Positions 58,605-63,999 of a stretch of 64,000 bases of DNA are shown here, piece by piece (the stretch's first letter is position 1; each line of letters begins with the position of its first letter). Made by a program: the position numbers and the translations under genes. The notes beneath the pieces were generated by a model. The model saw only the letters and a list, made by a program, of their open reading frames with translations. It was not told where the DNA came from and searched no databases. The stretch is from Amoeboaphelidium protococcarum X5 (Eukaryota; Fungi; Aphelidiomycota), in contig JALDTO010000155.1 of NCBI GenBank assembly GCA_023515725.1, forward strand, positions 1,088,984 through 1,152,983, given 5' to 3'.

Positions 58605-59289
58605 TAATGGAGATCGTCAAGCTTAATCAGGAAGGACGTTAGATCATGCCATTATATAAATCTTATCACCCGTGTGCATCAAACTAACGCGAGAATTTAA
58701 GACCAATAGCTATATTTAAGGTCCGAGTTGTAGAAAACTTTATGCTAACGCCATCTGTAATTGACATGTGTTCTGCCGATGAACGTTTAAGTAGCCTTAG
58801 CAAGCATGATTTTATCAAAGAGTGAGATTTTAAGAGTCCAAATATTTAGACTCAGGCAGATCAAATGGTACTCAATTAGCTTGCAATTCCTGGCACCACT
58901 TTTGGAGAACACAGTAAGGTGCACCTTTAAGGTATCTGGAAATGAATAATGTCTAAACAAAATTCGTGGAACGAAACTGTTAAATGTATTGACGGTTTCT
59001 CAGATTATGAAGATTGAGTCGTTTGTCAGCGGCTGATCAAGGGGTCCGCCTCTGCTGACACGGTTCTTCTGACAAGTAGTTTTTAGGATTTGAATAGTGA
59101 ATTTTGAGTAATTGAATATAATCTTATCTGGAAATAGTGTTTTCTATGCTTGACAAAGAGGTCCATTGGAACGGTGGTTCCCGTGTCTCTGCCAGTACTA
59201 ATTGTACGGGCAGCCCACGTAACAGAAACAGCGCACGGCCTGTTGACTACGAACAACAATCATATCTGATTGAGTTCTAAAGATGGATA

Positions 59290-59870: not shown

Positions 59871-60480
59871 GGCCCAAACATCGATTGGAGATTAAATCGA
59901 GTACACAGCAATTGGACTGGTTCAGTTTACGTTGATTGCGATAAAGTTAAAATATCAGAACAAGATATCGCTATGAACAACGTCAATTATCGCGTGATTA
60001 GTCATGAGGGCGGTTTTGTTCCTCAGATGCATCTGTAAGCTGGCAAGTATGTATGTACGTCAGAGGTGTGAGATCACTGACTCAAGTGTGAGCTGTTGTT
60101 GTGCATAAAAGGATGGTTTGGCGTGTAAATCTTCTATTCTGGAGAGAGAATTGTGATCGTTAGTATTGTAGACTCTACTGTAAATGGTAAAAAACTTTTT
60201 ATGAGTGGAATGCTAGCTGAGGTCTCAGGACAAAGACCGTTTTGATGTTTACATAGGAGACTTCTTCTGCCAAGATGAGGGCATCAATAACAATATTGTG
60301 TAAGAGACTTTATTCGCATGGTAAAAATGAAGATAAGACCAAGAGATAGGATAAGGCTGAAAAGCATATCCGCAAAGTTCTCAAGGGTCGCAAGATTAAA
60401 CGCGTCGACAGGCATGTGCTGAAAGATATGGTTAAGCGTCGCTTGCAATTCGCTAGTGATGACATCAAGTTATACTACGT

Positions 60481-60575
60481 ACTAGGAGTCAAATGAAATC
60501 ATTCAAAATCCCAAGTAACTTTGGAGCGCGCTTGCCAAGCCGCATAATTTGAAAATCTACCAAGCATTTGAGCTC
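60481..60575 (-). ncRNA. Candidate Fanzor omegaRNA scaffold
   Basis: Nested stems directly 3' of the Fanzor stop codon: outer GAG(c)TCAAATG/CATTTGACTC, inner TTCAAA/TTTGAA, and two hairpins. Confidence 0.55.
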
Positions 60576-63500
60576 ATTCTGATTCTTGAGATCGACTTTG
60601 ATTCTTGCTGCACAGATATTTTGGTCGAGGCTCATCGCATATCAGACATATAAGGACCTGTGTAAGATTTTCAGCTGCCATGATATCTCGATGATAAAAC
60701 TTGTGGCACTTTCTACAGTACTTGATTCTCATTCCAAAGCTCTCACAAACACAGCCACAACATGGCGCCTTCTAAGAAGTGAGGTACTCATTCAAAAAGA
60801 CAACAGGATAGCCTAGAGACTTCACCTTCTGTACAAAGTGGCGCTAAAATGACAGATGAATAGTCTGCTTACTGTCAAATTGAGCATTTCCAATACCAAA
60901 CACCACTCGGCCGTTTGACTTCTAAAACACGCTAGCATCAACCATTTTTAGAATAGCATTGGTAGCTCTATCAAACTCTGCTCTTTATGCCTTTTTAAAG
61001 TCCCAATGTCTCTTTTGCCGTATTTCAGATGAATAATATGACCTTAACTGCTAATAGATATCAATGTACCTTTCCCAATAGCATTCCATTGACTCTTCTT
61101 CTCCGCGATACATAGACCGTTCTAACTGAGTAATATTAGATGGCCTACCTTGGTGATACTTTCTAAACTTACGTCCAGGCTCATTGACTGCAGAAGATTT
61201 CAAAGCTAATGCTCTAATTATGCGCGATTCTCCTTGCCCTTTGACAGCTACAACTCCAGCAGTGTATCTTTCGCCAATGTCGAGACAGCAAATCCAGTAT
61301 TCAGAGAGTTTATCCGGCTAAACTTTAACAGTGTCAGACACCTGCATTGTAACTTTACTCAGTCTTTTTCTCTAAGCAGCCTCTAGCAAGCCTTCACTTT
61401 AACTTCCAGCAAGACGTCTCACCTACTACTTACGTCTGATATCAATCAAGTGAACTTTTAAAACTTTACCGTTAGTTATGAAAGTGTTAGATAGTATTTT
61501 ACGCGTAGTATCACATGCTTCTGGCATATACTGACTGAGCAGTCGCAATCCCTTCTTCAATTTAATACCATAGCATTCTCGTAATGTATGACCTTTCTAC
61601 TTTACCAACCCACCTTCACTATAATAACATTGCAGATCTCGAAGAAGCTCTTGTTTGCGCTCTTACTCCATCTATGGATTATTAATAATTGAACTCTAAA
61701 GTAGCATCATCATTGAATTTTCGGTAAACGTAACATAACAATCTTGCGGAGATGACAAAGGATACCCATATTGACGTTCCTTGGGAAGCAGGTCGTTCAA
61801 AGACTAAAACTTTTAAAACACAGAAGGCATCTTGTCAATTTCCTCAATTCTACTGCGTAACTCAGGATCATGCTCCAGTACTTGTGCAGCCAACAGTTCG
61901 ACTCTGCCAATTACTTGAGACGCAAACTCAGAATCTAACTAAATAGCAAGCTAGTCCACAATTTACGTAATGTTTAAAGTGCGATCAAATTTTCTCTCCA
62001 AACCATTCATGATATTCATCTACTATCCAAGCAATTGCCCAAATTTGAGAACAGCGGCACCTTTTTGGCTTGCATTAGATCTGCCATTACGTAAAAATCT
62101 AATCACGCCTTACCAAAACTTCCTACCTCCCTATCCCGGAGTGTCAGAGTAGCAAATATCATCTAATAAGGAAATTTCATCAGGATATTACTCCAAAATA
62201 ATGCCAATAAACCATTGCACACCTAATTAAGCCATTCTTTTTAGAAGATTAATGTCTCTCACCACTGTCTGAATTGTAGCGACCAATTACTTTTACAACT
62301 ACTACGACAAAGAACCCTTACTGAGGCATTTTCTCAACGATCCAACCTCCAGAGTAGACATAGAATGAGCACTTTTCAACTTTTTCATTAGCAAGGTCTC
62401 TTCAGTATTAATTCTCTTCTAACCACTTGAACGCGCATCACATTTATCGCGAGTTACAGAGCTGCTAGCACGATAGTTGCCACGTCTCGCTGTCTGGGAG
62501 GACTAAACACGTCTCTTTTTACGCGGAGCTACCTCGATATCGTCAGATTAAGTAGTATCATCACTCTCCTCCTAGCGTTCTTCATGACTTTCAATATCAC
62601 GGATGAACTTTGGTATCTACTTCTTTGGCTGAGGTATTTCCGATTTAGACTTGCGATTCCATTCAACCTCCTGGAACATATATCGCCCACCGCTTTATAC
62701 AGACGTACCACTTTATCGATCATCAACAAACTCCTTCTTATAAAGAGGCAGAAATCTATTGTAGCCTTTCCACCTTTCTTGAAGAGATAAATAAGACACC
62801 TCTTCACGATACTTTCCAACTTGACGGCTTTAGATTTTCCACTCTTAGTAAGCATCCAATTTTACAGATTTCAGCTAAAGGACGCTTTCATGCCACTTGG
62901 AATAAAGATTCAGTAAGGCATAAACTTCGTGATACTGACGATGAGCAGCTGTCAATGAGCTAGCAGATATTTCACGTCGAATCCATTCCAATGTACCCAT
63001 AGAGACGAAAACTTCATCCTCCACAGGCTTGAACAGATTATCAAGTGAATTCTTTTTATAGTTCGGATCCCCCTCTAGGGACTGAACAATGAGACTCTCT
63101 TGATTAGAGTCGAACACACGCAAGGCCTGACAGAATATGGGACCAACTTCCATTACACTCTGATACTAACTAACGATACTCTTAACATCTGAATGACCCG
63201 CTCCCATCAGCTTACGAATGATTTTCAAATTGCGCCCAAAACCGAATCCTTTTACATTGTCAGAGTAATCGTTACCTGATACTACTGCGAGCGCAACCCA
63301 GGCAGAATTTGTCAGATTCAATTTATCGCAGACCATTTTCCTATCCAGTACAAAAAATTTCAATAATCCGCAGTCAAATGTTGGCTTTGCAGCTACCAAG
63401 ACATTCTTATGCATGAACAGATCAGAATCAAAGCTAACTGCGACGACTGGATCTTTACACTTGGCAATGTGAACATCTGCCTCTCCAAACGCAACTTCGA

Positions 63501-63999
63501 CATTGTAGCCCGCTTTAATCAGCTCCTACTATAAATTTGACGCGTCATCAGCCTTAAAATGCCAAGTAGAGCGCTCAAGCTTTCCAATCATGCACCACTT
63601 TGCTTTACTCACTTTCTTATCAACCGGCAGATTTTCCAAACAATTACGCAGTTTCAGAATTTGTTTCAGTCTGGCATTGACGCGTTTGAGAGAAGTCTGA
63701 GATTTCTCGCAAGTCTGCTCTCCTTCAAACACCAATGTGACAATGTCTTTTATCGGCCTTGCCTCACCTTAAACCATCACCATTTAATTAAGAGGAAGCG
63801 CTGTCTTTACGAGATGGATGCTAGCCTCGAGAGGATTCTTGCTGCGATTGTAAATCCTGCGCAGATGGCGATAGAATGTACCATTGAAGTCTACCATAAT
63901 CTTGAACTGTGATCCTAAAGCTGGGGTGGCCATTTAACACACTCTTTATATATCAACTGCTCTTTGATTGCTAAAGAGGTTCAGCCTTCTTAATTGACG
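60574..63999 (-). CDS. FEN1/XPG-type PIN nuclease fused to Fanzor1/TnpB-like RuvC nuclease (frame open to window edge; first in-window ATG 63933)
   Basis: Single TGA-free frame. PIN motifs: VDFNG, VFEG, GEAD, DSD, SGNDY. Fanzor motifs: FITNG, CLDIGE, VVFGIGNAQF, NEYLTSQK, CRKC, HRDIMAAEN, RPKYL. Confidence 0.88.

Follow-up and report, generated by a model that had tools for sequence, protein, structure and literature searches.

A predicted two-nuclease protein joining a FEN1/XPG-type PIN domain to Fanzor1 in transposable elements of an aphelid and other early-diverging fungi

Fanzors are the RNA-guided nucleases of eukaryotes, and the reason why transposons retain them is the open question addressed here. 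Homing has been shown for bacterial TnpB, but eukaryotic cells mend breaks mainly by end joining, and this would destroy the target. The closest described systems are the Fanzor1 proteins SpuFz1 (8GKH/9CEZ), PpFz1 (9CF1), and GtFz1 (9CER), which are transposon cargo. Fanzor1 has been captured by Helitrons and, in Mucoromycota, by MuDR elements with terminal inverted repeats (TIRs) and 9-bp target-site duplications (TSDs) (Bao and Jurka 2013, PMC3627910); a PIN fusion was not described there, and in PGv-1 a GIY-YIG nuclease is a separate gene beside Fanzor. Here we describe a gene at the end of a 64,000-nucleotide stretch of the algal parasite Amoeboaphelidium protococcarum X5 (the window; GenBank assembly GCA_023515725.1, contig JALDTO010000155.1, positions 1,088,984 to 1,152,983), which joins a FEN1/XPG-type PIN domain to a Fanzor1 module within a transposable element.

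Alignments, profiles, an AlphaFold model, Foldseek, and structure comparison with VIA confirm the combination that an earlier note on this DNA had read from its letters, namely one predicted polypeptide with a FEN1/XPG-type PIN domain and a Fanzor1 module whose rearranged RuvC triad is intact. As far as we found, the fusion is apparently undescribed in the literature, and its function is predicted from sequence and models. It is not described in the full-text literature searched, which lies outside Repbase and most subscription papers and includes some papers by title or abstract, and word searches found it unmentioned in the three founding Fanzor papers and a 2026 review. The sequences themselves are publicly available, annotated as hypothetical proteins, and for some of them Pfam displays XPG_I and TNB. 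The earlier expectation that standard-code mining would miss the protein was mistaken, since NCBI holds the same protein as MP228_001458 and dozens of relatives use the standard code. The ends of the element, its candidate omegaRNA, and the fungal MuDR carriers are additions to what the earlier note had seen. We propose, with belief and doubt about evenly balanced, that the fusion is a transposon-borne two-nuclease homing factor, in which Fanzor would cut the empty allele and PIN would resect the break, favouring homing over end joining. Among the roles considered, this one, already raised in the earlier note, suits the evidence best. The features of the protein are as follows.

60574..63999, minus strand: PIN-Fanzor1 open reading frame (ORF; table 6), stop TGA at 60576-60574; seven 5' codons and a 5' leader of about 1.1 kb lie beyond the contig end
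63097..63999, minus strand: predicted FEN1/EXO1/XPG-superfamily PIN 5'-nuclease domain with H2TH/H3TH-like motif (profile, model, Foldseek, alignments)
62419..63096, minus strand: connector, a long predicted helix and then a low-confidence charged linker with PRKKRRV (P0157 model; dN/dS 0.51)
62526-62506, minus strand: PRKKRRV, candidate nuclear localisation signal (basic motif in the sequence)
60577..62403, minus strand: predicted Fanzor1 module (WED/REC/RuvC/zinc ribbon; sequence motifs, structure comparison)
61281-61279, minus strand: RuvC-I catalytic D, from sequence
60900-60886, minus strand: FGIGN, whose Gly at 60891-60889 takes the place of the usual RuvC-II Glu
60789-60787, minus strand: shifted RuvC Glu, from sequence
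60687-60685, minus strand: RuvC-III D, from sequence

The minus-strand frame from 63999 to 60577, read with table 6, comprises 1,141 codons, 46 of them UAR (19 TAA and 27 TAG). It contains no internal TGA, the first being the stop at 60576-60574, and the probability of such a frame is about 9e-13 from the TGA frequency of the window. The earlier note had counted more than 1,140 TGA-free codons with over 40 UAR codons, which is borne out, and every motif it quoted was found in its place; its six or more fragments are instead 15 pieces of at least 25 amino acids under the standard code. Three lines of evidence support the reading of TAA and TAG as glutamine in Amoeboaphelidium protococcarum: numerous additional long frames of the window are readable under table 6 alone; TAA and TAG exchange with CAA and CAG, and with one another, between copies; and in standard-code relatives Q stands opposite 13% of UAR codons, where it is among the commonest residues, versus 3% elsewhere. 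Segments between UAR codons gave only weak Pfam matches (XPG_I, E 0.2; TNB, E 0.006), and domain analysis was based instead on relatives and on P0157 (MP228_001458), an NCBI hypothetical protein from a second assembly that is 98.7% identical to the window protein without gaps. The frame is unbroken in both assemblies and in independent runs (four contig sets of unrecorded type, which indicate presence only).

The window stops at the contig end, which truncates the gene at its 5' side. Extension past this limit, as proposed earlier, was achieved with the complete copy on contig C179, a member of the same element family (family A), which encodes 1,148 amino acids and supplies a FEN1-type start, MGVKG, seven codons upstream of the window limit. 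Contig C344 was considered as the absent 5' part of the window copy and was ruled out, as it belongs to C158. The NCBI model of P0157 begins at the second Met and loses 29 residues, including Gly2, so that MGVKG is the start to use. Gly2 is required by FEN1-family enzymes.

In the AlphaFold2 model of P0157 (123-row alignment, mean pLDDT 84.8, pTM 0.64), residues 1-279 form one confident domain and residues of about 511-1112 a second confident module, with a long helix and then a disordered linker between them. The N-terminal profile matches FEN1, EXO1, and Rad2 at E of about 1e-17 over residues 1 to about 270, and in Foldseek searches with the model FEN1 and EXO1 rank next after seven Fanzor1 structures. 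The fold of the domain is PIN-like, with both the N and I regions and an H2TH/H3TH motif, and its sequence motifs lie on the minus strand at 63894-63880 (VDFNG), 63732-63721 (VFEG), 63486-63475 (GEAD), 63429-63421 (DSD), 63276-63265 (GNDY), and 63258-63235 (H3TH-like NVKGFGFG). The MG start, the acidic cluster (D15, E70, E151, D153, D169, D171, and D222), the gateway Lys/Arg (K77 and R84), and the H2TH motif are shared with the FEN1/EXO1/XPG/GEN1 superfamily. The fusion PIN is not nearer to any single subfamily, and unlike them it is joined to an RNA-guided module within a transposon. Wherever they align, K77 and all acidic positions are unchanged across 27 motif-complete homologues, a set selected by motif, and R84 is invariant in a separate PIN alignment. 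At the position of FEN1 D86, every family A copy checked has Glu (E70); family B, described below, and the other relatives have Asp. We predict that the domain has 5' flap/exonuclease activity.

The C-terminal half models as Fanzor1, the outcome on which the earlier note had staked its reading, beside a FEN1/EXO1-type N-terminus. The top seven Foldseek matches of the P0157 model were Fanzor1 structures (E 1e-11 to 1e-9). Folded alone, the module reached a pTM of 0.84, and by VIA it aligned with PpFz1, SpuFz1, and GtFz1 at Z 16.1-18.7 (rmsd 4.1-4.7, 450-480 residues), compared with Z 11.8 for mimivirus Fanzor2 (332 residues) and 10.6-11.2 for TnpB. The D-X(125-275)-TS...RD spacing is present in P0157, with D885, G1015 at the canonical Glu site, E1049 just before the zinc finger, and D1083; these D/G/E/D positions are invariant where aligned in the 27 homologues. 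The module is thus modelled as Fanzor1-type with the extended REC/RuvC architecture, not as Fanzor2 or TnpB, and TAM-dependent RNA-guided cleavage is predicted for it (TAM, target-adjacent motif). The fusion resembles SpuFz1, PpFz1, and GtFz1 over the full C-terminal module and in its rearranged RuvC, whereas it has about 500 additional N-terminal residues with a second nuclease and is only 12-15% identical to them.

The zinc ribbon noted earlier stands in part: five Cys are present, but the first Cys of the usual TSxxCPxC knuckle is Ala in the window copy (TSQKAPCCGC ... CxxC). PF07282 matched at E 0.006 for the window piece and 7e-8 for relatives, some of which lack the zinc finger. The best sequence match of this tail is to Fanzor2/IS607 TnpB (E 1e-3 for the single sequence, 5e-8 for the profile). 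The fusion element shares this tail and scarless insertion with Fanzor2/IS607 TnpB (ApmFz2, 9B0L), whereas the structural match is far weaker and the element has neither a recombinase gene nor a GG core at its ends. A Fanzor2/IS607EU identity was ruled out, as the fold is not the compact TnpB-like one (Z 11.8) and the element has no serine recombinase partner.

Since Rad2/XPG profiles match the PIN domain about as well as FEN1 and EXO1 do, the domain might act as a second cutter of the R-loop, making an XPG-like incision of the displaced non-target strand at the distal single-/double-strand junction, which an R-loop provides, while RuvC cuts the other strand, so that cut geometry would be altered. 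We consider this improbable, as the flexible linker would give no fixed geometry, the RuvC triad is intact, and Fanzor1 RuvC alone cuts both strands (PMC10432273).

Both nuclease domains are under joint purifying selection: between the window and C179 copies, the ratio of nonsynonymous to synonymous substitution rates (dN/dS) is 0.19 for PIN and 0.23 for Fanzor, or about 0.2, and 0.51 for the linker. A degenerate pseudogene riddled with stops was ruled out by this selection and by UAR = Gln, and two separate genes were ruled out because the frame is single here and relatives likewise have a single ORF in the standard code. Searching with one PIN piece brought up full-length metagenomic relatives that match both halves, and a search with a Mortierellaceae RuvC region found 88 proteins from Mortierella, Linnemannia, Podila, Dissophora, others, and Umbelopsis. 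Both domains occur in 55 of 90 proteins of the latter set, many of the others being short or partial models. Both PIN and Fanzor domains are carried by 70 proteins, each motif being kept in 48-68 of the 70. A full-length homologue search with the standard-code orthologue P0004 returned P0004 itself only, whereas region-wise searches did find relatives. Standard-code relatives are common in soil fungi of the family Mortierellaceae, with dozens there and in metagenomes. Since trees of the PIN and RuvC domains within the fusion family agree in their main clades, the fusion is old and inherited as a unit.

In Synchytrium endobioticum and Umbelopsis ramanniana (L116 and L117), PIN is followed either by remnants of Fanzor or by a Fanzor ORF with a frameshift, and these degraded fusions extend the family to chytrids and Umbelopsidales. 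In supplementary file 3 of PMC10432273, KAI3658238.1, a 1,219-residue hypothetical protein of Amoeboaphelidium occidentale, has FEN1-type N-terminal motifs by eye and is likely a PIN-fused Fanzor unremarked in the published table. Pattern searches of limited reach did not find the fusion in viral contigs or prokaryotic genomes. By features and shape, giant-virus clusters of the Atlas are nearest to both halves (TM 0.67-0.70 for Fanzor, 0.68-0.72 for the XPG-like half), which hints at a viral origin of the parts; these clusters may just be the largest in the Atlas.

The Amoeboaphelidium protococcarum genome contains about eight copies or fragments of family A with coding sequence, 94-99% identical, and about seven of family B, whose protein is 45-48% identical to that of family A. 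Each element of either family has a single ORF, and PIN-Fanzor1 is the sole gene of the whole 4.66-kb family A element of the second assembly. The search for copies, ends, and a transposase, suggested earlier, yielded copies in this genome and in early-diverging fungi and defined ends, but no transposase in the family A element. The left end of family A is TCCTTTCTAT, and all copies diverge past CTAGTA at the right end, where the following features lie.

60526..60543, minus strand: conserved non-coding hairpin with YTRGCAA loop, candidate omegaRNA stem 1, about 30 nt past the stop
60480..60519, minus strand: terminal stem of the candidate omegaRNA, TTAC:GTA, from pairing with the terminal GTA
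60482..60485, minus strand: element right end CTAG; six copies diverge directly past CTAGTA and independent runs break at 60480
60480..60481, minus strand: target dinucleotide TA, single copy, predicted TAM core at empty sites, from empty homeologues
60465..60479, minus strand: predicted 14-15 nt guide, the right flank, on Fanzor1 architecture

At two loci (C98 and C158) an empty homeologue places the flanks exactly 2 bp apart, a distance taken from coordinates, and in family B, as well as in the homeologue of the window, this 2-bp gap reads TA. Because empty sites keep 2 bp that read TA, the element has the form TC...CTAG and lies 5' of TA, with neither inverted repeats nor duplication. A target of 8 bp, TCCTAGTA, with duplicated core was ruled out, as empty sites retain exactly 2 bp, and a TA target duplication in the style of Mariner-type Spu-1 was ruled out, as the left end lacks TA. 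As in Helitrons, family A has a 5'-TC and a CTRR-3' end and neither TIR nor TSD (family B ends in CTTG). Helitrons insert between A and T; here every copy has T after its right end, but only one of six has A before its left end. No RepHel gene is present in cis, and the genome has five Rep matches. Because the left-end A is not conserved and no Rep gene shares the ends, we leave the carrier unclassified, as Helitron-like but not Helitron. MuDR/Mutator features are absent from family A, which has no TIR, TSD, or transposase.

Families A and B both retain the YTRGCAA-loop hairpin, as do two metagenomic loci with proteins of only 31-34% identity. In nine related sequences, 95% of cells of the hairpin and terminal stem are paired, with three double-change pairs (0-4 of 500 shuffles); this covariation is moderate evidence, because the structure was drawn from those same sequences. 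As TTAC pairs with the terminal GTA, the target TA would lie inside the scaffold. Solved Fanzor1 complexes have the 3' target dinucleotide in the scaffold and the 5' one in the TAM (PMC13565253), and by this analogy the guide would begin at 60479 and the TAM would end in TA. We infer that the 3' end of the element is a candidate omegaRNA scaffold plus a 14-15 nt flank guide. The target dinucleotide within the scaffold, as predicted, would be a likeness to Fanzor1, whereas the candidate RNA differs in sequence and has no Rfam match.

The genome has 24 occurrences of the hairpin core motif versus three of a control, and about 11 are distant from known PIN-Fanzor copies; sites include C146:267879, C205:604825, C207:786964, C206:111916, and C207:281755 of genome G000. 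The isolated motifs may be RNA-only 'ghost' loci. Past the stop codon of Mortierellaceae-type loci (L059-L110), a 6-bp stem with an NNGCAA-type loop lies about 60-140 nt inside the right end. A strict pattern, picked after inspection, finds this hairpin, which echoes the aphelid one, in 11 of 21 loci versus 12% in shuffles.

RNA primers and hybrids are substrates of FEN1 and EXO1, and PIN relatives in viruses are RNases. The PIN domain might likewise act on RNA or an RNA:DNA hybrid, either trimming the omegaRNA 5' end from the element mRNA, in which the candidate scaffold starts about 30 nt past the stop, or clearing the guide:target hybrid for turnover. This is an unlikely role for a domain that retains the duplex-binding H2TH/H3TH motif and the gateway residues of DNA 5' nucleases, and in known Fanzor1 proteins the maturation and use of the RNA proceed without PIN (PMC10432273).

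In Mortierellaceae, the fusion genes lie inside MuDR elements with TIRs of 20-29 bp and, in L059 and L060, 9-bp TSDs. In locus L065, divergent pieces follow one another in the order FAR1 (weak), MULE (weak), and SWIM (above cut-off), and SWIM is also present in L079/L081. At L065:6816-9367 (minus strand) of Mortierella sp. GBAus27b, these form an intron-containing MuDR transposase that lacks annotation and shares one TIR pair with the PIN-Fanzor gene, the two lying head-to-head. As these carriers have TIRs, TSDs, and a FAR1-MULE-SWIM transposase, the fusion is cargo and not the transposase, and it switches carriers across two transposon types, as other Fanzor1 genes do (PMC3627910).

These carriers bear on two further alternatives. 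The PIN domain might serve transposition of the carrier, by trimming donor flaps or repairing gaps after strand transfer, while Fanzor only shares the polypeptide and delivers PIN to the nucleus or site; indeed, the fusion is always inside mobile elements, and MuDR insertion leaves 9-nt gaps. We regard this as quite unlikely, because the domains stay together across carrier swaps and the fusion is kept in TIR/TSD carriers and in TIR-less, TSD-less carriers of different chemistry. Alternatively, the fusion might itself be the mobility enzyme of the aphelid elements, in which it is the solo ORF in families A and B and for which no autonomous partner with the same ends was found. This is most unlikely: the Mortierellaceae relatives have a MULE transposase, a guide from the element's own flank would be unable to choose new sites, elements of about 485 bp with the same 5' end have neither the gene nor the RNA hairpin, and Helitron Rep genes are present in the genome.

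The homing proposal would work in three steps. First, the element 3' end would be transcribed into an omegaRNA, with a scaffold ending in the target TA and a 14-15 nt right-flank guide. Second, the Fanzor1 module would recognise an AT-rich TAM ending in TA plus a guide match, that is, the empty allele on the sister chromatid after excision or on a homologous or homeologous chromosome, and make a staggered cut with 5' overhangs. Third, the tethered FEN1/EXO1-type domain would strip 5'-ended strands or flaps at the break, and the remaining 3' tails would commit repair to homologous recombination instead of end joining, so that the element would be copied back in. A separate transposase would move the element to new sites: in Mortierellaceae this would be MuDR in cis, and in the aphelid probably a Helitron-type rolling-circle enzyme in trans.

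FEN1-superfamily enzymes work on flaps and on 5' ends, EXO1 carries out resection at breaks, and the poxvirus enzyme G5 is required for recombination. In favour of homing, empty homeologous sites exist and insertion is scarless, SpuFz1 cuts with 5' overhangs (PMC10432273), and restorative homing is established for TnpB (PMC13565253). Several points weigh against it. The family A PIN may be weakened, because where FEN1 has D86 it carries Glu in place of an Asp that is conserved elsewhere, and the long disordered linker (pTM 0.64) leaves the coupling of the PIN and RuvC sites putative. RNA guiding and cleavage by the fusion are predictions from genes and models. AG-TA occurs both at the filled right junction (AG-TA-guide) and at two of the inferred empty sites, which poses a difficulty in telling self from non-self. 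No Helitron sharing the element ends was found, none of the five Rep matches of the genome lying near copies of either end. To our knowledge, homing has been shown for no Fanzor.

Engineers attach exonucleases to Cas9 and Cas12 to shift repair outcomes. If the homing reading is true, the fusion may help the element to copy itself back into the sites it cuts and would be a natural counterpart of such designs, one for which orthologues in the standard code are numerous, the ends are defined, and the guide position is predicted. The retention of a FEN1/EXO1-type nuclease by a widespread Fanzor1 clade across aphelids, Mortierellomycota, other early-diverging fungi, and two transposon types points to a built-in answer to why Fanzors are kept. 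A bolder version, possible though rather less than probable, is that of a natural programmable 'cut-and-resect' enzyme that spreads to empty alleles without a transposase and probably arose from two giant-virus parts. Its stronger form, in which the fusion additionally moves the element to new sites, is very doubtful.

The elements of about 485 bp lie at L054:950-1431 and L055:7741-8224. Their 5' 330 bp or so are common to family A, and they have their own 3' end (…CTAT); each is preceded by a T run and lacks both Fanzor and the RNA hairpin. This apparent exchange of 3' ends is a Helitron-like trait. In a family B copy (L017:3029-3060), the terminal 32 bp or so of the left end are exactly inverted, with the palindrome CTTATAAG as boundary. 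The window copy sits inside a small dispersed repeat (60479-60322, minus strand, and 60489-60480). Empty paralogues and the homeologue of this site read ACTCCAAG-TA or ATTCCAAG-TA where the element end reads ACTCCTAG-TA; this likeness is seen at the window insertion only and may reflect chance or a microhomology-made junction. Additionally, a dispersed repeat of about 240 bp at 58977-59224 of the window has at least 20 copies, and the C179 element carries another within its 5' leader. An internally deleted family A copy (L021/L022; C98:1541390-1559131) contains some 16.5 kb of DNA nested within it, part of which is a direct repeat of 2,018 bp at 99.4% identity.

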